A DNA stretch of 64,000 nt from Macrostomum lignano (lineage: Eukaryota), in contig NIVC01001797.1 of NCBI GenBank assembly GCA_002269645.1, positions 124,001-188,000 on the forward strand. Direction: 5' to 3'. Below are positions 5,566-53,830 of this stretch, in pieces. The stretch's first letter is position 1, and every line of letters starts with the position of its first letter. Position numbers and translations under genes: made by a program. Under the pieces are notes generated by a model. It saw only the letters and a program-made list of their open reading frames with translations. It was not told the origin of the DNA and made no database searches.

Positions 5566-6584
5566 ACTCCAGATGCAGATGCAAAGGAAACAAAATGCAT
5601 CCCGTGAGCATCAAAGCCCATATGAAGCGATTTCACTGTAGACAAAGAATCGAAGCCAATAGCACTATTCATAGCTAAAAATATTGGAGGACAAAAGGGA
5701 GAAGTGAATTGAGGAGACCTGGGACAATAAATTTATATTGAAAGTCGCCAGTGCAGGCCAATAAATAAAAATTGCAGACCCGCCCACCCCACCCCTCCCC
5801 AGGCGCTGGCTGACTGCCTCGCATGCTTCATTCTATTATATTTGTCTGCTTTTTCACGACCCAAAGCAGCAAAGCAACTGCAGTGACCAGAGAGCGCATA
5901 GAAGAGAAATCAATAATTGTTCCACTCTTCTCTCTAGCGATCTTATCCTTACCTTGTTTCATTGCTGCTTTTTTGGCAACAAGTCTTCTGCTTCTGCGTA
6001 TTGTCTTCTAGTCTCGCCCAGCGCTGGCCAGAATTAGAGGAGACAGAAGGAGGAGGAGCAGAAAGCGAAAGAGAAAAATTATAATGAAAAACATGCATAC
6101 GAGCGTAGTACTAAAAGAAAGAAGCAAAAACAGCCGTCTTCTAGAAGAGAAAACCCAGGCAATAATTAAAGGGACCAGAGAGTAGTGAAATTCCGGCGTT
6201 GAATTTCGCACTGCCGCCTCATTCATTTCCCAGCCCGGTTAATAACATCTTTGAGCCGACTTGCTTATCAAGAAAACAAGGACATTGCAGGAGGGGACGG
6301 TTGCAAGAAGATTTCAACTGCAATTGAGAAAAGAGAAAAACAGGATGAGAAATTCTTTTAACTCTCTGAATCTGGCTGGCAAAGCCATCGAGTTGGTGAA
6401 TTTCCCGTTGTGATCCGCCAGATTTGGCTGGCACGTGGGTCAACATGAGAGTCCATATTGTAGGGGAAACCGGGGGGGGGGCGAAAAGAACCTCACAGAT
6501 GGCCTAAGCCTAATGGATTCACGATTCTATTAGTCCTTCACGTGTTTCCATTTCACGTGGGTGCAGTGCATCCTGTGTGAGCGT

Positions 6585-9500
6585 GTGAGAGAGACAGGGA
6601 GAGACAGGGAGAGACAGGGAGAGACCGGGAGAGAGACAGGGAGAGAGACAGGGAGAGACAGACAAGGAGAGACAGGGAGAGAGACAGGAGAGACAGGGAG
6701 AGACAGGGAGAGAGACAGGGAGAGAGACAGGGAGAGAGACAGGGAGAGAGACAGGGAGAGAGACAGGGAGAGAGACAGGGAGAGAGACAGGGGAGACAGG
6801 GAGAGAGACAGGGAGAGAGACAGGGAGAGAGACAGGGAGAGAGACAGGGAGAGAGACAGGGAGAGAGACAGGGAGAGAGACAGGGAGAGACAGACAAGGA
6901 GAGACAGGGAGAGAGACAGGGAGAGACAGACAAGGAGAGACAGGGAGAGAGACAGGGAGAGAGACAGGGAGAGAGACAGGAGAGACAGGGAGAGACAGGG
7001 AGAGAGACAGGGAGAGAGACAGGAGAGACAGGGAGAGACAGGGAGAGAGACAGGGAGAGACAGACAAGGAGAGACAGGGAGAGAGACAGGTAGAGACAGA
7101 CAAGGAGAGACAGGGAGAGAGACAGGGAGAGACAGACAAGGAGAGACAGGGAGAGAGACAGGGAGAGAGACAGGGAGAGAGACAGGGAGAGAGACAGGGA
7201 GAGAGACAGGGAGAGACAGACAAGGAGAGACAGGGAGAGAGACAGGGAGAGACAGACAAGGAGAGACAGGGAGAGAGACAGGGAGAGAGACAGGGAGAGA
7301 GACAGGGAGAGAGACAGGGGAGACAGGGGGAGAGACAGGGAGAGAGACAGGGAGAGAGACAGGGGAGACAGGGGGAGAGACAGGGAGAGAGACAGGGAGA
7401 GAGACAGGGAGAGAGACAGGGAGAGAGACAGGGAGAGAGACAGGGAGAGAGACAGGGAGAGACAGACAAGGAGAGACAGGGAGAGAGACAGGGAGAGACA
7501 GACAAGGAGAGACAGGGAGAGAGACAGGGAGAGAGACAGGGAGAGAGACAGGAGAGACAGGGAGAGACAGGGAGAGAGACAGGGAGAGAGACAGGAGAGA
7601 CAGGGAGAGACAGGGAGAGAGACAGGGAGAGACAGACAAGGAGAGACAGGGAGAGAGACAGGTAGAGACAGACAAGGAGAGACAGGGAGAGAGACAGGGA
7701 GAGACAGACAAGGAGAGACAGGGAGAGAGACAGGGAGAGAGACAGGGAGAGAGACAGGGAGAGAGACAGGGAGAGAGACAGGGAGAGAGACAGGGAGAGA
7801 GACAGGGGAGACAGGGAGAGAGACAGGGAGAGAGACAGGGAGAGAGACAGGGAGAGAGACAGGGAGAGAGACAGGAGAGACAGGAGAGACAGGGAGAGAG
7901 ACAGGGAGAGAGACAGGGAGAGAGACAGGGAGAGAGACAGGGAGAGAGACAGGGAGAGAGACAGGGAGAGAGACAGGGAGAGAGACAGGGAGAGAGACAG
8001 GGAGAGAGACAGGGAGAGAGACAGGGAGAGAGACAGGGAGAGAGACAGGAGAGACAGGAGAGACAGGGAGACACAGGGAGAGAGACAGGGAGAGAGACAG
8101 GGAGAGAGACAGGGAGAGAGACAGGGAGAGAGACAGGGAGAGACAGACAAAGAGAGACAGGGAGAGAGACAGGGAGAGACAGACAAGGAGAGACAGGGAG
8201 AGAGACAGGGAGAGACAGACAAGGAGAGAGACAGGAGAGACAGGAGAGACAGGGAGACACAGGGAGAGAGACAGGGAGAGAGACAGGGAGAGAGACAGGG
8301 AGAGAGACAGGGAGAGAGACAGGGAGAGACAGACAAAGAGAGACAGGGAGAGAGACAGGGAGAGACAGACAAGGAGAGACAGGGAGAGAGACAGGGAGAG
8401 ACAGACAAGGAGAGACAGGGAGAGAGACAGGGAGAGAGACAGGGAGAGACAGACAAGGAGAGACAGGGAGAGAGACAGGGAGAGACAGACAAGGAGAGAC
8501 AGGGAGAGAGACAGGGAGAGAGACAGGGAGAGAGACAGGAGAGACAGGGAGAGACAGGGAGAGAGACAGGGAGAGAGACAGGGAGAGAGACAGGGAGAGA
8601 GACAGGGAGAGAGACAGGGAGAGACAGACAAGGAGAGACAGGGAGAGAGACAGGGAGAGACAGACAAGGAGAAACAGGGAGAGAGACAGGGAGAGAGACA
8701 GGGAGAGAGACAGGGAGAGAGACAGGGAGAGAGACAGGGAGAGAGACAGGGAGAGAGACAGGGGAGACAGGGAGAGAGACAGGGAGAGAGACAGGGAGAG
8801 AGACAGGGAGAGAGACAGGGAGAGAGACAGGGAGAGAGACAGGGGAGACAGGGAGAGAGACAGGGAGAGACAGGGGAGACAGGGAGAGAGACAGGGAGAT
8901 AGACAGGGAGAGAGACAGGGAGAGAGACAGGGAGAGAGACAGGGAGAGAGACAGGGAGAGAGACAGGGAGAGAGACAGGAGAGACAGACAAGGAGAGACA
9001 GGGAGAGAGACAGGGAGAGACAGACAAGGAGAGACAGGGAGAGAGACAGGGAGAGAGACAGGGAGAGAGACAGGGAGAGAGACAGGGAGAGAGACAGGGA
9101 GAGAGACAGGGAGAGAGACAGGGAGAGAGACAGGGAGAGAGACAGGGAGAGAGACAGGGAGAGAGACACGAGAGACAGGGAGAGACAGGGAGAGACAGGG
9201 AGAGAGACAGGGAGAGAGACAGGGAGAGAGACAGGGAGAGAGACAGGGAGAGACAGACAAGGAGAGACAGGGAGAGAGACAGGGAGAGACAGACAAGGAG
9301 AGACAGGGAGAGAGACAGGGAGAGACAGACAAGGAGAGACAGGGAGAGAGACAGGGAGAGAGACAGGGAGAGAGACAGGGAGAGAGACAGGGAGAGAGAC
9401 AGGGAGAGAGACAGGGAGAGAGACAGGGAGAGACAGGGAGAGAGACAGGGAGAGACAGGGGAGACAGGGAGAGAGACAGGGAGAGAGACAGGGAGAGAGC

Positions 9501-23381: not shown

Positions 23382-26300
23382 CACATGTCCTGAAGCCTTC
23401 TCAAGGTGAAAATAAAGTCAGGCTCAAATGACAGTGATTTATGCATTCATCTGAACCTTAGCAAGGTATACGTGCAATTTTAAAAAAATCTACCGAGCTA
23501 TCTCCATTCTACAAGTACTTCATTCCATAGCTTGTGATAATGCATAATTTGCATTGATTGTACATATGGGTAGAACCGTAGATCAAGGTACATGTAAGTT
23601 AAACCAGTGATAGCCGATTTCAATTATAGTAAACCAACTTAGATGATGCAACACATAAATATAAAGTTTCATGTAGCTCAGCGGGGGTTTGGGTTGTGTG
23701 GCTTGCCAATGTACTCAAATTTGGTCCCTCTGACCCATGAGCTTGAGTATGCTCTGTCCAGTGTACTTGACTCTAGACTGTTATAGGCATGTTGGTTGTA
23801 TGCTTCATACTTGTATAATAAAATCAATTGATGATAAATTCTGCAAGGCACGATTTCTTTTCACAAACCAAGCTCAACCTGTATTTGTTAGTGACTTGAC
23901 TTGCAGTCCATAGTGAGCTTCAAGCCTACTTTCAATATTTCTACTCACCTTGCCATACATGTATAAAGAAATGAGCCATGCAACGCATGCACTATCACAT
24001 GAAGAAAATCGCCTCAAGATCTGCTTGTTGTGCTACAAAAAGGGCTCATCAATGCAACGAATAGGTAATGCCTCGCTGAAACGCATTCAGGCACACTTTT
24101 TGCCCAACTACAATGCGAATGATGAGCAGCTACCTGCAGCACTCTGTGCCCGATGCAACAAGCTTCTGGCTGACGTCGACAAGGGCATAAAAGCGCCGAA
24201 TGTTTTGCCGAACTCCTCTGAGGTCGTAAAGGTGAGCCCAACAAAGATTACGCGACAGTCCAGCAGTTGTGCTTGCAAAATATGTGAGACTGCCCGGTTC
24301 AACCCGATTGGGAAAGGACTGGGAACATGGAAACCAGAGCCACATTCGCTTGGACGACCCGCGTGTTCGGATCCAGATCATGGTCTGCCACCGGCACAAC
24401 CTGTTGTCATCTGCCAGCGCTGCCACTCAATGGTTGGCAGAGGTTTGCCTCACTACTGCACGCAAACACAGCGACGAGAAAATCTATTCAGTAAGTTGTC
24501 GCTAGACCGTCGAGGTGCCGAAATCCACGCAAGTGACGTGATTAAAGCTAAGGCTGCTTCCACCGGCTCAAACTCTAGATTTCAATTGGCAACTAGAGGT
24601 CGTGATCTTACAGTGTGTGTTGGGCAACGGGCTGGTAGTTCTACATCAATGAGAGGTGGCTGCGCCGTACCAGCAGAGGAATTCAGCCGATTCCAGCAGA
24701 CGCTGTGTTTGAGCGGTCGGCAAACTAAGTTGGCCGCTCAATTTTTTCGAGCATGGAAAGGACGCAAAAGCATTGAGCCAAATTTGCGCAGCAAACTGAG
24801 CGCCATCGACTCTGCTCTAGATGATTTGTTTGAGTTGACTAACCTAGAGATGGACTGTGCCAAAGGAAAAAGGGAAATGCGCAGCATTGTATTCTGCACT
24901 GATCCTCTGGCTCTGATTGACAGAGTGATGGCACGTCGTCAGGTCAGTGCAGATGACGGCGCATTGATTAAAGTTGGCATCGACAGCGGAGGCGGCTTCT
25001 TAAAGTTTTGTATTAGCATTGTGCCTGCTCAAGGTTTAAAAGATCAACCTACCGGAAGTCGCAGCACGTACTCAGAAGGCGCATGCCGTTTCCATTTTGA
25101 GGATGGAGGAGTCCGTAAACTGCTCCTGCTTGCCATTGCCGAATCTGTTTCCGAGTCCTACGATAATCTGCAGCAGATCCTGAATCTTCTTAATTTGCAA
25201 GGATTTTCATTCTGTGCAGCAGTTGATATGAAAATTTCGAATGCGATTCTGGGACTTCAGTGTGTGTGTGTGGAGACTTTGAGAATCGAGTCCGGGCATT
25301 CGAACAAGCCTATATCGATCTTGGAATCCGCGTCACCCCGAAAGTCCACGCTGTTATTGACCACGTTGTCCAGTTTTTGAACATGTCCAATCTAGCTGGA
25401 GAACCCAAGAAGGGACTTGGCTTCTGGTCTGAGCAGGTGGTTGAGACTGCACACCACGATTTCAGCAGCATGTGGCAAGACTTTCGGATCGATTTTCATC
25501 ATCCATCGTATCCAGATCGACTGCGCAAGTGTGTTGTTGCATACTGCTCTCGTCATGCCTAAACAAAATGTGAACTAGCTAAATCAATCAAGACTGCGAA
25601 TTAGGATTATACATTTTTCTTTATTGGGATGAACAAATAGTTCTTAGTCAGACCCTGTAGAGTGGAAAGCGAAATTAAACATAACATAAACAGGAAGTAA
25701 ATAATTGGAATCTTTCAAAAAGCGTGTTATCTTACCCATTCAACCCACCGAAATACAATGTCCGCATTTCAAAATTCCATTCCAGCTTTGCAATGCATGC
25801 ATAGAGATTGTTAGTTCACTAGAAAATTAAATCTAAAAAAGACTAGATGATCGCTAGCCATTGTCTTATCCCGATAGGACCCTAAAGTTATTTTTTCTTT
25901 TATTTATTATTGAATTAATGATAGGAATACATTAGGTAGCTGGTGGAAACCTTAATTTAATTCTTTCTATGGTAAACTTATATCGCAGAAGTCCTTGTTC
26001 TTACCCATCATCATGGAAAGGGAATAGCTTCCTTTGAAAACTCAGCAGAATTTAATAGAAGGATATGCTAAGGGCCAAAATGGCATGAATACGAGAGCTG
26101 TGCAGCAAATTTACAGGCTCACAGCCAATGAGATGGTAGCTACGTATGAGGAGGGAATAATAGCTACAACTCAAAAGCAAGCGATAGAAAAATATCTAGG
26201 ATAATATGCCCTCCATGCCTTGCATCACTCACGCACAATTTTGCGCATTGCTTCTTTGTCCACTTTTATGTAGCATTCTCTGTACTGTACTGTACGAGTG

Positions 26301-40986: not shown

Positions 40987-41245
40987 TTATTTCTCTTCGC
41001 ACCACTCGGTCTCCCGGCGCACCTGCTCTTCCTCCTGCGGCGTGAAGTCGCATCGAATGTTGAACGCCTTACGGATTTCTTCCGGACTCCGCCCTCTAAT
41101 AGCGTCAGCAACTGCTTTGCACGCCGTGTCGAGCAGGCCTCGAATATCCAGATAGTTGGCAGCTTGGATCAACTCGAACAGGGCCGATTGATCCATGCGA
41201 AGGAATTCGGCGTCCCAGCTGGATAGCTGCTGCGGCTGCAGGTCT
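40987..41245 (-). CDS. SKP1: SKP1-like protein, exon 2
   Basis: CGCAG acceptor phase 2; [55 protein letters not shown]...EWCEEK-stop is the Skp1 dimerisation domain. Confidence 0.95.
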
Positions 41246-41289
41246 CTGCGTGGTGGATTACAGGCTTCCTAGATACAGGTAAGCAGAGA

Positions 41290-41670
41290 CTCCTAGGTCT
41301 TCTCGCAGACACCCAAGTCCTCCCATAAAGACACCCAAGCCCTCCCATCGACACCCAAGTCCTCCCATAGACACCCACATCCTCGCAGACACCCAAGTCC
41401 ATTCAGAGACACCCAAGTCCTCCCAGAGACAAACAAGTCCTCCCATAGACACCTAAATCCTCCCATAGACACCCAAGTCCATTCAGAGACACCCAAGTCC
41501 ATTCAGAGACACCCAAGTCCTCCCAGAGACACCCCAAGTCTACCCAGAGACACCCAAGTCCTCCCATAGACACCCAAGTCCTCCCATAGACACCTAAATC
41601 CTCCCATAGACACCCAAGTTCTCCCATAGACACCCAAGTCCTCCCATAGACACCCAAGTTCTCCCATAGT
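41290..41670. repeat. Minisatellite of about 20 bp, GACACCCAAGTCCTCCCATA, filling the SKP1 intron
   Basis: Direct periodicity. Confidence 0.92.
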
Positions 41671-41691
41671 CTTCCCTGCAAGTCAGCTCAC

Positions 41692-41930
41692 CTGGCATTT
41701 TCATCGTCCTCAGGTGGTGGCGGGTCGTCTTTGTGATGCGCGCACCAGGCCATGGCTTTCCGAAGCGCGGCAGCGGTCACGTGAGGCAGGGATATGGCCT
41801 CTTCGTCGTCGTCAATCTCCGTTACGCCGAGATCGTGCAGCATCGACCGCAGCAGCAGAGACTGCTTGGCGGTGTCGGCGTCAACTTCGACTATTTCGTT
41901 ATCGACTGTTAGAAGCTTGATGCCGGGCAT
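41692..41930 (-). CDS. SKP1: SKP1-like protein, exon 1
   Basis: MPGIKLLTVDNEIVEVD...AWCAHHKDDPPPPEDDEN (Skp1 POZ domain); GTGAGC donor; the two exons total 498 nt (165 aa). Confidence 0.95.
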
Positions 41931-42049
41931 GGCCGTTTAAATAGCTGGAATCCAGTTTTAACATTTCGCTACTCATAGTAGAGCACGCATAGATACCCAC
42001 AAAACAGCGGACACAGAAGTACTCCCTCCTCCCCTGACAGAAGCCACTA

Positions 42050-47961: not shown

Positions 47962-50649
47962 GTGAGCCTGCAGTCAAATTTTCTATGGCATGAACATATT
48001 TGCTACTTGTTGAATCTGTGATAGTATACAGTTATCACTACAGCAAAAATATAGTTGGCAACTATATTAATTTGAACTTGAATATAAAATCGACATTATT
48101 GTAAAGTTAGTTCATAAGCCTAAAGATTAGAATAATAGAACATTGTTACCTATCTACCTACACAAGAAATATATACTAGCCTAGCTCTACAGCACATGGC
48201 GCAAGCTATGTCACTCAAAAGTCAAAAATAAGCTAAAATATAAAATACTAAGCATATTCTCAAAGATGGTAACCTAATATTGTCAAATATACTATATATA
48301 CTATAGAGTATACAAGGAGCATGCCCCATTTTTTGGTATGATTCATTGTTTGCTATATATATATCATTATTAGCTATATATACCATTATTTGCCACATGT
48401 AATCTTATCTTTTAGCTAACCTATTCACTAGACCTACTCTCTAGCTTATCTATATATATAGTGTACATGATCTAACTTCCTAGGACCTAGGACATATAAT
48501 TGCAAAGCAAAGAAAATTTTATATATATAATATACTTATAACTAAGACTAAGCAAGTACAATATATTTATGGAATTTTATGATTATAATTTAAGAGTATA
48601 TTATAAAATTTCTTTATATCTACTATAGTTGAGAAGCGACATGTATACCAGGATTTCCTGGCATACAACAAGGGTCTTACCATTCTTTAGTATACACCAG
48701 GATATATCCCAGTATACATGACACAGTAGATACATTGTGTCAAATGACAATTTTTTGTATTGGCACACAAACCCAGTATACAAATGAGGTTTTGTCATTT
48801 TTTCTGGCATTAAAATTGGCATACACTAATGCATGATCCAAACTATGGTATATCTATTTATAGCTATATGTTAAATATTTTCTTATAGCCTATCTATATC
48901 TTTATTTATAGCTAATATTTTTTCTTTTCTTTTTGCCTTTTCCTCTCTTTTCTCCCTTTGCTTTTATTAGTTGGTTCTAGAAGAAAGCCTCAATAAATTA
49001 TTAACTTATTAAGTCTTGCTTTATTTAGGGCCTAATAATGGCAAACACTGGATAGTTTTCTTATTAGCTTTATTATCTTAACTTTAGCCTTTTATTACAA
49101 ACCATAATATACATATAGACTTAGAATTAAGTCAAGAGCTCTTTTTATAAAAGTTTTGAAACTAGCAACATTTATCCATTTTAAATAATTTTATATTACT
49201 TTTTTATCAAATAAATGGCTTCAATCTTTAAATTTCAAGTACCTAGGTCTAATAATAGATTTAGGGGAGGTACACAAGGTAGGCCTATATATCTTCCATT
49301 GAGTTTGTTTTTAATTTTTTTCTATTTGGCCCTTAAAATGTAACTTAGTAATCTATTTACAACCTATATCCTCTATTCAAAATTTTCTAGATCCACTCCT
49401 GATTCAAAGTTTAACTTTAAGCCATTTAAGAATTATTTTATCATTATTATTACATTTTAAATTTTGAATTGTGCAAGTTTTATTTGCCTTGATCTTAGAG
49501 TCATTTGGTTGTTCTAAGCAAAGCTGGCCCCTGGCAGCTAAATGAATATTTAAAATTGACCCTTTTAATGACAAAAAAGTTTTAAGACAATACTCATATT
49601 CAATTCCCTCAATACTATTTAGTATTCAGTAGTTTATTTGAAGATTTATAAAACAATAAAAACAAAAAGATGGTTTTTAAACAAATTCATTTTAAGGTAA
49701 ATTCCAGGCATTTTGGTGACAGTTAATTTTGGCAAAAAGTTTCTCTTTTACTTTTACAAATCATTTTCTATGGCTATTTATTTAGTCTTTTTATTATATT
49801 CTTACTAACATAACCAATGTGTCTATATCGTACTGTAACCACCTACAGCCTACAAAATACTTTCCCTTTTTGTTAAATGTAATGAACACTTGTGCTCTGA
49901 CAAACAATCCTGTGATGTGCTGATTGTTTGTCGGGATAAGAAGCTTTGATAAATATCCGCACTCTGACTTTGTACCCACCAACCTGAAGAGACCGACCAA
50001 GTATATGAGTGAACCCCATCACCAAAGCGGCTTTGTCACAGTACGATCTACAACTCTGATCTTATGAGAACATTTACATGTACTATGGTTTCCACATTTA
50101 TTGAATCAAAATTTCAATTTTATTGTATAGCCACATCTTAAGTACCATGCATGAAAATACAAATGTTTTATATAATTTGTTGTAAAATGTAGTATGTGGC
50201 TGTACCACAAAGCTAAAATTTACAAAGTTAAAATACTCGACATTAAGACATGACTGTGTGGACTGTGGAGATAGACACACATCTAAAGAGTGCAGTCTTA
50301 GTTTTGAAAGGAAAAGTTAGCATAAGATTCACACTAAAAAGAATGAACAGCATTGCATTATGTTAAAGCATTAAAGGGCATTTCGCGGTTGGGGTGGGTG
50401 AGGGCATTGCGTCATTCGCGTGGCTTTTGTTTTGGGTCTACAGTTTGGTTTTCAATGACAACTGCATTGACTTTGACTTGGATTGAGTTAGAACACTCTT
50501 GGAAACACACATTTGTACTCAGACAATAAGCATTGTTGACAAAACGTACTTGTTGCCAAATTTAACATTGCTTGTTGCCGAAGTCACAATTTTTCATGTC
50601 ACCGAAATCAACTATCACCGAAAAGCCTGGCACCCTTTTAAGGTTCTCT

Positions 50650-50980
50650 ATTCCAATAAGCTGCCATGGGGATAAGCTGAAAATTATCAACATGGATCTG
50701 TGTGCATAGGCCTAAAATTGGAATTAGGCCTATTGACACAGCCCATAGACTTGAATAGTGGCAGGCAGCAGCTATTTCAATAAGTTGCTATGGGGATAAG
50801 CTAGAAATTATTATCACAGATCCATGTGAAAAAATTGGAATTATTGACACAGCCTATAGGGCCTAGACTTGAATGGTGGCAGCTATTTTAAAAAGCTGTT
50901 GTGGGATAAGCTGGAAATTATTGACATAGATCCATGTAGATAAAATTGGAATTATTGGCACAAGACCATGGGGATAAGCA
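50650..50980. repeat. Decayed three-copy repeat of about 115 bp (GGGATAAGCT...AAATTGGAATTATTG.CACA)
   Basis: Three alignable copies starting near 50647, 50772 and 50883; they differ by GG(G)CCTA insertions. Confidence 0.8.
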
Positions 50981-51957
50981 CTTCTTAACTTTAATTAATT
51001 AAATGACACATTTCACACTAGGCCTAACACTACAAGTAGTCCTAGCCTACAATAGGCCTATGCATCTTTAGGTTTATTTGAACTTACAAATAAAAGAAGT
51101 AGCCATCTAGAATAGGACACATTTCTTTCTTGACATACATAGCCATGGACATGGTATGGGTTTGCTGACTTTAAGAAGATCCTAGGCCTAGGAATTGTAG
51201 AATTAGGTCCAGCCATGCAGCTTAGGTCCAGTCGGCTACCTAGGCCTAGCATTAAGGGCTATAGGCCTAGGCCGTACCTACCTAAGGACCTAGGCCCACT
51301 TCTTTAAATAAACTAACAAGCAAGTATTGATAGTAGGTCAAACTTGGACATAGTCATAGGCCTAGATTATGTTCCCACCAATCCGACGCATGCAACTGCG
51401 AGCAATAATCTGCCGCCTGCATCTGTTAGGGCTAGCAATGGACTAAGTAATTTAGACAGTTGAAACCTAGGGTAGGCCTAGGGAAGGGAGCTTCGCGCGT
51501 ACGCGCTTCGGACTGCACTGTGCCCTTCTATCTACAGAGTGCTCAATGAAAGTGTTCAGGAAAAAAATGCATGCATTTGATGTTTTTTTACCTTATCTGT
51601 GTGATACATGTCTTGCTATCTCACTCAGCTTCCTCTGTGGTACTTGTTTTAACCAGAAGTTCATGAAACATTTGGCGCGAATTTGGGTTTCTTTGGTCCA
51701 GAATTTTGGTTAGGCGAGCTCGCTGCTCGCGCCATGTTTAAACTTTAAAGTATATCAACATTCAACAAATGTTTATTTTTTGGTATCAACAACTCTGGGT
51801 TTTTTAAAGTTGGAAATCTAGTTGCCAATGGCTAGGCCTAGTTTTCGTTGCCCATTGGAAACTAGCCAAATTCTCAAGGATGGATATTTCCAAGAATCCA
51901 AGGCTATGTTTGATTTTAAAAAGCAGAAATTTGTTCTCTTAACTCTAAGTCTAAGAT

Positions 51958-52012
51958 CAGGGGCGTAGCCAAGGGGGGGGGGGTTATGGAGGTCATGACC
52001 CCCCCCCCCAAC
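51958..52012. mobile_element. Solo end of a CAGGGGCGTAGCC-type non-autonomous DNA element
   Basis: CAGGGGCGTAGCCAAG-G11-TTATG...CATGA-C11 hairpin typical of such MITE ends; no partner end found. Confidence 0.35.
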
Positions 52013-53830
52013 TGGCTGATCCAGGCCACATTTTTAGCATCCCCCCTCCCCCATTGCAAAGGCCTAGCACCCTCTGCCTGGCTGCCCCCCAGTTGAAGCT
52101 GTGAGCCTGTGACCATGTGACCCCCCCACAGATCACAGATTGCGTGTCTGGATCGCATAGGTCAGTCGTTGGCCTGACCTCAGCTGGTGGGACAATTGTC
52201 GTCGGAGCAGATGGGCGACCTGCGATGCTGAAAAGGGGTAAAAAATAATATGACTCTGAAAATAATTAACCAAATGAAACTGAAGGATAGCCCTTTTATT
52301 ATATTTACAAAATCATTTTTTGAAATTGGCAACTTGCACAGGGAAAATAAGTTGCCAGATTGGCCTCTGATGGCAAAAATCCAGTTGCCAATAAGATTTT
52401 CAAGGGGCCAAAAATGCCATATAGCCAAAAAACTAGACAACAATAATGTTATATTAGGGCCTAGCTAGCCCTAGACCTATTCTTGTTTAGAATATTTCAT
52501 AGGCCTAGTCTTATCCTAGGCCTTGCATAGGCCAAAGCATAGATTTTTTTGAGCTGAGCTCAACTCAAGTATTTTGTATTCTAGGACCATTATTCATTAG
52601 ACTGTTTTACGTAACATAATTATAGTCTATCACATATAATTATTATCATAATAGTTATAAACAATAAATGACTATAATTAGGAAGGTAATATAGATTATA
52701 GCCATTAGACATAGGTTGCACCATAGATAGGGCCTACTATATTTTGTATATATAGCATGCACCAAAATATTTTTAGAGAACAATCTAGACCTAGTGCTAG
52801 GCCTACCTAAATACCAATTATGGACTTTTTCTATGCCTTAGTTCATAGTAAGTAAAGGCAAAGCTATAAAAATATAAAGCATATATTAATATATATAAAT
52901 AAGACATTTATATTTATACAATACTGTTGAATAAAGTACTTTGCATTTTGAATATTCACTTAAGTACTTATATCTATTTTATAACATAGCTACATTCTAG
53001 ATTATGTTAGATGCATCCCATATACTAAAACTAAATGCTTATAAAATATATGCACCAAACTAAATATATGTCAAAAATGCTATTATGAACATGAAGGATA
53101 TCTTTTGGAATATGATTAGACTATATAAACAAATATAGCTATAGAGTAGACTATAGTTTCCTATTTAACCTATTAATAATATCACAATAAATTTTGGTCC
53201 TATGGGCCTAGGCTCTCTAATTAGACCTAGGCCTATATAGTGACTTAACAATTTTGTTTTAATAGGGGGCCTAGTCTTTGTAGGCCTAAAGCTTTGCATA
53301 AAAATATATTTTAGGTTTTATTATATTTTATAATTAATTTTGAGCTAGAAATTGCTATATCATTGAATTTGTTAACTAATAATATCTAATATATGAGCAT
53401 ATATAAAGATTATAAATGATTAATTAATATTTTTGAGATTAGATGGGATTGCAATCCTATTCTAGATATTATCAACTTTTCTAACTTGAATAAATCAGAG
53501 GCTTAATAGTATTAAGGGTAGAGTTAAAATGTTTTATTGATACTAGCTAGCATCCTAGTTTTCAATTTTGCATCTTGAATTTGGACCTAGGAAGTCAATG
53601 ACTATGATTCTAGCACTTAGAACCACATATTAATGCTGATATGTTAAGGCTTACAGTGGAATTAATGGCATGTCAAGGCTGAGAGGTCAAGCAATGCAAT
53701 GTGTAGTTTATTCAAACAAGAATTATTCTATTCTATTTGTTGCCTCCCTAACTGGGGGCGCTGATTGCTAGTATATTACTAACAGTAGCTGATAAAAACT
53801 TGATGATCTTCTGTGCAGAGGCAGCTCGAG

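Follow-up and report, generated by a model that had tools for sequence, protein, structure and literature searches.

The stretch of Macrostomum lignano DNA analyzed here, hereafter the window, comprises 64,000 nt (positions 124001 to 188000 of contig NIVC01001797.1 in assembly GCA_002269645.1). It contains an AT-rich, divergent intergenic region of 5.9 kb (47962 to 53830) that lies between the ATG of a RanBP3-like gene on the minus strand (47961) and the ATG of a golgin-84 gene on the plus strand (53831), as well as a SKP1 gene at 40990 to 41936 that is 99% identical to M. lignano proteins. Outside the intergenic region, the window consists mainly of exons and intronic minisatellite arrays. 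The intergenic region contains all copies in the window of the palindromic word TAGGCCTA and of its variants with longer G-runs, here written TAGG(G)CCTA. Below, we describe that this word arose by insertion of 6 or 7 bp at a plain TA dinucleotide at four sites, and we weigh the excision of a TA-targeting transposon against other causes.

Over the whole window, we identified 15 copies of TAGGCCTA versus 0.84 expected, a number reached in 0 of 100 shuffles, and 4 copies of TAGGGCCTA versus 0.37 expected. Together with one copy of TAGGGGGCCTA, these make up 20 copies that all map within 49026 to 53288 and for which the length of the G-run is the sole difference (GG in 15, GGG in 4, and GGGGG in 1). 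Of the TA dinucleotides in non-array sequence, 30% fall in the region that contains all 20 copies (P ~4e-11). From 49026 to 53288, TAGGCCTA is the most frequent 8-bp palindrome, and GGCCTA, AGGCCT, and CCTAGG are among the top overrepresented 6-mers. Because 15 of the 17 AGGCCT words in this region are flanked by T and A, the unit is the 8-mer. As computed from their positions, the copies display no significant clustering beyond the regional restriction. The related words TAGCCCTA and TAGGGCTA (TA plus GCCC plus TA) also recur, at 52466 and 51427 in the window and at window-equivalent positions 51247 and 52515 in the paralogous locus L004 (see below); one of these words arose only in L004, by exact tandem duplication of CCTAGC.

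Three of the 20 copies lie in a decayed three-copy tandem repeat (50644 to 50985, plus strand), in which the units of ~115 to 124 bp each comprise two ~34-bp sub-repeats and a tail, and in which the repeat copies serve as internal empty-site controls for each other. At site A (50707 to 50714), copy 1 reads GCA-TAGGCCTA-AAATTGG, while copy 3 has a plain TA and copy 2 has AA at this position; the sub-repeats and the paralogous loci L004 and L005 have TA. At site B (50725 to 50732), copy 1 reads GGAAT-TAGGCCTA-TTGACAC, while copies 2 and 3, the sub-repeats, L004, and L005 have a plain TA. Sites A and B are 6-bp indels, which were fused into one gap by MAFFT and which we separated by pairwise and manual alignment around the conserved AAATTGGAAT. 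Site C (50857 to 50865, plus strand) is a 7-bp insertion, at which copy 2 reads CCTA-TAGGGCCTA-GACTTG, compared to CCCA-TA-GACTTG in copy 1 and a plain TA in L004 and L005. These three indels had been proposed in a sequence-only reading of this DNA, and they are correct in sequence and coordinates. In addition, we identified a fourth site, D (51019 to 51026), at which the window reads CACAC-TAGGCCTA-ACAC and both L004 and L005 are empty, with CACAC-TA-ACAC.

The paralogous copies of the whole locus were reached via members of the SKP1 cluster and the hand-spliced RanBP protein, and derive from NIVC01000628.1 (L003/L004) and NIVC01000767.1 (L005). L004 and L005 are near-identical to each other and ~4 to 5% diverged from the window. 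In a three-way alignment, the four sites are each a plain TA in both paralogs, and in all three loci the remaining repeat copies and sub-repeats are empty at the positions homologous to A to C. Because the other repeat copies, the sub-repeats, and both paralogs are empty, A, B, and C are insertions in the lineage of the window rather than deletions, i.e., that the TA form is ancestral and the long form is derived. The polarity suggested in the sequence-only reading, a clean change from TA to TA+GG(G)CC+TA, agrees with these data, and filled and empty copies do exist in the form of the window lineage and L004/L005, respectively. From the three repeat copies alone, gains and losses are equally parsimonious, at three each, and the long form could be ancestral with the TA alleles generated by precise deletion between TA microhomologies; however, given the empty sub-repeats, the paralog copies, and the other copies in the window, this explanation requires many independent base-perfect losses, and we consider it highly improbable. 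It is similarly hard to believe that the insertions are assembly or polishing artifacts of the PacBio-based Mlig_3_7. While this is a long-read assembly of a repeat-rich neopolyploid, 12 copies of the motif are identical in independently assembled paralogous contigs, and the errors of long reads do not take the form of one specific 6-bp palindrome placed at TA.

In ~10 kb of aligned non-array sequence, we identified 23 indels of ≥4 bp, of which 4 are of the TA/TAGG(G)CCTA type, and these 4 are all in the lineage of the window and all within 312 bp. The empty sites are CA-TA-AA, AT-TA-TT, TA-TA-GA, and AC-TA-AC, so that the duplication covers TA only; TTAA and TWA were rejected as targets. Flanking bases were lost in none of the four events. 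By inspection, the inserts are not repeats of the bases next to them, as they would be after slippage by tandem duplication, and the microhomology between the flanks of A to D and potential donors is at chance level. The substitution divergence of the tract containing A to D is ~2.5% and equal to that of the neighboring sequence; conversion from a diverged donor was therefore not the source of the inserts.

The copies other than A to D are older. Two old copies common to the paralogs are located to the left (49026 to 49287), with TAGGGCCTA at 49026 and TAGGCCTA at 49280. An older dense cluster (51053 to 51480) contains TAGGCCTA at 51053, 51183, 51241, 51262, 51357, and 51473 together with numerous CCTAGG, TAGG, and CCTA fragments; it is common to the paralogs, which differ in it by point changes and tandem duplications. 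Thus, between 51180 and 51480, the paralogs compared to the window show 5- to 6-bp tandem duplications of the motif words GTAGGC and CTAGG, and of CCTAGC in L004 only. These duplications are ordinary slippage, unlike the events at A to D. The right-hand old copies (51833 to 53288) are located at 51833, 52455 (GGG), 52500, 52728 (GGG), 52798, 53228, 53263 (GGGGG), and 53281, and all eight are found in L004, some with substitutions. Altogether, 12 of the copies other than A to D are intact in the paralogs as well, and 6 further copies are common to the paralogs but substituted in one lineage (e.g., TAGACCTA, TATGCCTA, and TAGGTTTA). The insertion process was therefore active before the duplication of the locus, and again afterward in one lineage only. 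Between window positions 49414 and 49426, L004 and L005 contain an extra ~330 bp with three copies of TAGGCCTA. This segment also includes the ~115-bp repeat unit in inverted orientation, which forms an inverted-repeat pair with the array. Part of this segment is flanked by direct repeats of AAGTTTAA, and loss from the window and gain in the paralogs are both possible.

The sequence-only reading had placed the motif in a promoter-like region. This description fits the position of the motif between divergently transcribed genes, but not its evolution. Between the paralogs, we counted roughly 8 substitutions in 144 bp of motif sequence (5.5%) versus ~4 to 5% in the flanks, and because the two values are similar, nothing indicates that the motif is conserved for binding. 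With 15 exact copies to 14 that have one mismatch, the region also fits neutral decay at ~10% divergence. These observations bear on the possibility that TAGGCCTA is a palindromic site for a transcription factor or insulator protein that was gained and retained by selection in a bidirectional promoter region. Confinement of the motif to a divergent intergenic region and a palindromic structure like that of sites for dimeric factors would be in agreement with this possibility. However, the absence of purifying selection is not, and selection does not explain why an exact 6-bp insertion arose four times. We consider this explanation very unlikely.

Based on the format of the insertions, we favor, tentatively and with less than even confidence, that recurrent insertion and excision of a cut-and-paste transposon caused the changes from TA to TA-GG(G)CC-TA; among the explanations considered, this is the most likely one. 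In footprints of Tc1/mariner elements, the duplicated TAs enclose the first or last 2 to 4 nt of the element (PMC6943129 and PMC2874221). At A, B, C, and D, the empty site has a single TA and the scar has two, one on either side of the filler, exactly as in this format. The filler is constant and dyad-symmetric, as two identical inverted ends would give, and its length of 4 nt and its symmetry are compatible with a footprint. Moreover, the copies of the locus differ in other DNA elements (a 938-bp element with terminal inverted repeats and a 558-bp insert, see below), and a second, unrelated locus (L009) has two copies of the motif; we count both observations in favor of a transposon.

We infer the transposon, its termini, and a 4-nt stagger from the scars as follows. 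The element would duplicate TA upon entry and would have self-complementary termini of the form 5'-GGCC...GGCC-3'. Its transposase would cut the non-transferred strand within the element, at 4 nt from each end, as for Minos, for which Arca et al. in 1997 reportedly described a 4-nt stagger and footprint. Excision would then leave two fully complementary GGCC 3' overhangs that could anneal and be ligated to generate the uniform scar TAGGCCTA, while imprecise joining would occasionally add a G. In this scenario, the intergenic region would be a landing pad for DNA elements, in which scars were gathered before and after the duplication of the locus. Secondary spread would come on top, with template switching at a quasi-palindrome having probably copied A or B into the opposite arm and with motif words in the dense cluster expanding via tandem slippage.

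Among known systems, Tc1/mariner (ITm) elements, and especially the 4-nt Minos type, are the closest in that TA is duplicated, the scar is TA plus terminal nucleotides plus TA, the insertion is 5 to 7 bp, and the flanks suffer no loss. The differences are that the implied GGCC termini are unlike those known to us for Tc1/mariner elements (CAG... or CGAG...), that we saw no element or transposase, and that 20 scars in 4.3 kb, of which 4 are new and within 312 bp, are far above the natural footprints that have been reported. In PIF/Harbinger, ISL2EU, Pangu, and Nuwa elements (PHIS), terminal inverted repeats often begin with GG ("usually GG" in ISL2EU), targets are short and AT-rich, and the target-site duplication varies between groups (PMC4482050). 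These duplications are TWA, AT, ANT, CWG, TNA, or none, and a group with TA is not described (PMC4482050); the sites A to D duplicate TA only, rather than AT (target A|AT|T) as in ISL2EU or TWA. As further background, PIF-type excision is mostly precise. Three other routes to a short filler were considered and rejected. A footprint of the hAT type, made by hairpins and P-nucleotides, would vary with the flanks; healing by telomerase predicts GGG on both sides; and fold-back synthesis at C predicts the filler GCTG and not GGCC.

Several observations weigh against a transposon. First, an element with TA|GG...CC|TA ends or a matching transposase was found neither in the window nor in the paralogs nor in ~80 kb of other DNA. 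The last of these is a wider sample of four M. lignano loci (L006 to L009), which brings the total to ~180 kb of non-redundant sequence out of a genome of roughly 0.5 to 0.8 Gb. A search of the window for TAGG...CCTA elements with terminal inverted repeats gave only chance-level pairs, including 49244/53229, with 12 of 14 positions matching (inverted repeat I17, 18 nt at 89%), of which ~1 is expected by chance, and counts of TAGGCC ends in all of the loci likewise pointed to no element. Second, the motif is all but absent elsewhere, an odd distribution for an active family. In L006 to L009, the only occurrence of TAGGCCTA is a pair 14 bp apart at 6259 and 6273 in L009 (6259 to 6280), an unrelated locus, in AT-rich DNA (tatcTAGGCCTAtcttatTAGGCCTAttc), and L006 to L008 contain no TAGGCC at all. 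The motif is thus not generally abundant but occurs in rare, tight clusters. Third, the four events are confined to 312 bp of one lineage, with none in the remaining 5.5 kb and none in the sister lineage, which for a transposon requires extreme local hopping or a hotspot. Fourth, to our knowledge, no Tc1/mariner termini start with GG. Fifth, the G-rich variants, five in number, are all oriented alike. Finally, GG-initial termini are typical of ISL2EU, in which the target-site duplication is AT and not TA (PMC4482050). Hence, the proposal of a TA-targeting transposon in the sequence-only reading is supported as far as the scar format is concerned, while no element with the corresponding ends is present in the ~180 kb, and the suggestion that the element is very active is not borne out genome-wide.

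The main rival explanation is local, self-templated insertion without a transposon. A 3' end in TA would, in the course of replication or of the repair of a break, mispair with a nearby TAGGCCTA, copy GGCCTA, and return via the new TA. Since the palindrome templates in either orientation, clusters would seed their neighbors, and correction of quasi-palindromes and slippage of hexamers would be manifestations of the same instability. The positions of the new copies are suggestive in this respect, because they form stepping stones from the edge of the old cluster, i.e., from 51053 to D (34 bp), then to C (162 bp), B (132 bp), and A (18 bp). The motif is rare genome-wide yet tightly clustered, and self-templating accounts for this clustering at least as well as a transposon does. 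The failure to find a donor element and the tandem duplications of motif words that the sister lineage has in the same cluster (GTAGGC, CTAGG, and the L004-specific CCTAGC) also fit.

Further evidence for templating concerns A and B. These sites are 18 bp apart and at exact mirror positions of a preexisting inverted repeat (quasi-palindrome at 50698 to 50741, inverted repeat I19). The stability of the predicted DNA hairpin is −4.7 kcal/mol with both sites empty, −3.4 or −4.8 kcal/mol with a single insert, and −13.7 kcal/mol with both inserts (z = −5.1). Template-switch mutagenesis at quasi-palindromes is established in bacteria, yeast, and human, and its hallmarks, i.e., an imperfect inverted repeat, a gain of complementarity, and a template in the other arm, are present for the A/B pair, in which the second insert makes the arms perfectly complementary. 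For C and D, we searched for a mirror relation and found none. Based on these predictions, one of A and B may be a template-switch copy of the other. The A/B pair can thus be explained without a second visit by a transposon, which also counts against the transposon. Likewise, the claim in the sequence-only reading that GGCC at site B lacks a local template is wrong, because A mirrors B 18 bp away and older copies are 34 to 330 bp away. Nevertheless, a quasi-palindrome template switch covers at most one of A and B, and neither C nor D nor the first insertion.

Self-templating in general has difficulties of its own. All four events are pure insertions without loss of flanking sequence, whereas repair by polymerase theta usually brings deletions; the microhomology is TA, i.e., 2 bp only, and matches of the flanks to candidate donors are no longer than expected by chance. 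The insert is invariably the same 6 nt, with no instance in which more of a donor, or a stretch out of register, was copied; C is a GGG variant for which the nearest GGG donors are 1.6 to 1.8 kb away; and the first copy at a new place, as in L009, is left unexplained. Compared with polymerase theta-mediated insertion and tandem slippage as known systems, the likeness is in donors at tens to hundreds of base pairs and in the 5- to 6-bp duplications of motif words in the sister lineage, while the differences are that A to D are not copies of adjacent sequence and come with a 2-bp microhomology and no deletion. Overall, we regard self-templated insertion as possible but doubtful.

Alternatively, a dedicated enzyme, e.g., a domesticated transposase or nuclease, could make a staggered cut at TA, after which a polymerase adds a fixed G/C filler, with no mobile element involved. 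The strict TA target, the fixed filler, G-runs of 2, 3, or 5, and the failure to find an element are in agreement with such an activity. On the other hand, extension of a TA end by a telomerase-type enzyme on a TTAGGG template predicts TAGGGCCCTA, which was never seen, and the strong confinement to one locus is unexplained. We know of no precedent for an enzyme of this type and consider it improbable.

A further comparison is with HIP1 (GCGATCGC) of cyanobacteria, an 8-bp palindrome that is strongly overrepresented and for which the spreading mechanism is not known. The motif described here is likewise an overrepresented 8-bp palindrome; however, HIP1 is bacterial and genome-wide, while in this animal the motif is confined to local clusters that are rare, and in the M. 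lignano locus the insertion at TA is directly visible. In the literature searched, which covered the motif as well as Macrostomum palindromes and Macrostomum transposons, we found no earlier description of the motif or of the process. Conservatively, what is new here is plausibly the excision footprints of an undescribed element, with a substantial chance of something less conventional. It is conceivable, although we would not expect it, that the motif represents either an undescribed group of eukaryotic cut-and-paste elements, with TA duplication, GGCC termini, a 4-nt stagger that yields an invariant palindromic scar, and extreme short-range reinsertion, or the transposon-free, self-seeding writing of the palindrome at TA beside copies already present.

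Whatever its cause, the locus captures sequence-specific insertion in the act, with the same 6 to 7 bases added at a plain TA four times in ~300 bp of gene-proximal DNA, and the A/B pair of inserts is predicted to give a hairpin with a stable stem of 10 bp. Should a transposon be the cause, M. lignano, in which transgenesis is routine as in no other flatworm, may carry a TA-targeting element of its own with activity in the recent evolutionary past, and this element could be a possible tool and would be relevant to genome instability after the recent genome duplication. If no transposon is involved, the insertions would represent a new local mutational mechanism that makes palindromes and potential regulatory sites; self-seeding in particular would give the iterated palindromes of bacteria a counterpart in animals, with visible birth events. 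The homeologous copies in the neopolyploid genome provide thousands of built-in controls.

The two DNA elements that differ between the paralogs are of other types. The window-specific, noncoding 938-bp element (49698 to 50635) has imperfect terminal inverted repeats of ~30 bp (CCAGGCATTTTGGTGACAG...), abuts the repeat array, is flanked by an 8-bp target-site duplication (TTTTAAGG at 49690 to 49697 and 50636 to 50643), and is missing from L004 and L005. By these features, it is a recent insertion of a hAT-like miniature inverted-repeat transposable element and marks recent DNA-transposon activity at this locus. The 8-bp duplication rules it out as the origin of the TA footprints. The 558-bp insert is specific to L004 (16352 to 16910 of the reverse complement, corresponding to ~51531 in the window), is accompanied by a TTTACAG duplication, is missing from L005 and the window, and is partly a GC-rich minisatellite (GCGCCGAGCCATGC...). 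L004 and L005, but not the window, also contain a ~315-bp short interspersed nuclear element that is headed by tRNA-Val, has an (AAT)n tail, and is flanked by a GAGAAGC duplication (L004 ~9019 to 9334, corresponding to ~48638 in the window). Between window positions 50970 and 50971, at the end of the repeat array, L004 and L005 have a 13-bp insertion, GGGTCACCGGTCA, that no other repeat copy has; it contains an internal GGTCA-CC-GGTCA repeat and may be a footprint of a different kind.

Elsewhere in the intergenic region, a segment rich in G/C homopolymers (51960 to 52130; CAGGGGCGTAGCCAAGGGGGGGGGGG...CCCCCCCCCC...) is kept between the paralogs and resembles a fragment of a dispersed repeat; to its right, at 52127 to 52299, unrelated sequence stands in L004. 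A short motif, (A/C)GTTGCCA(A/G), occurs at least 6 times in both orientations (50549 to 50591, 51820 to 51830, and 52329 to 52395). Apart from the tandem repeat itself, the window contains no second copy of the intergenic region, and scans of the window against Rfam and for tRNAs gave no matches. Exact look-ups of golgin exon 1, RanBP exon 1, SKP1 exon 1, and the UniRef SKP1 in public assemblies gave no match, and the low-complexity golgin exon, used as a query for homologs, had only an unrelated match at 25%. At 23950 to 25380, the window contains an open reading frame of 476 codons without a Pfam match. Over 92% of its length, it shares 99% identity with a family of 710-amino-acid M. lignano proteins that is found on at least three other contigs (L006 to L008) and has a 48% identical relative on L009; this open reading frame is probably a multicopy or mobile gene, to which we assign no function. 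Finally, the minisatellite arrays make up ~27.6 of the 64 kb, i.e., more than a third of the window. They consist of units of 4 to 84 bp in dozens of copies, are mainly intronic, and are common to the paralogs, between which their lengths vary.

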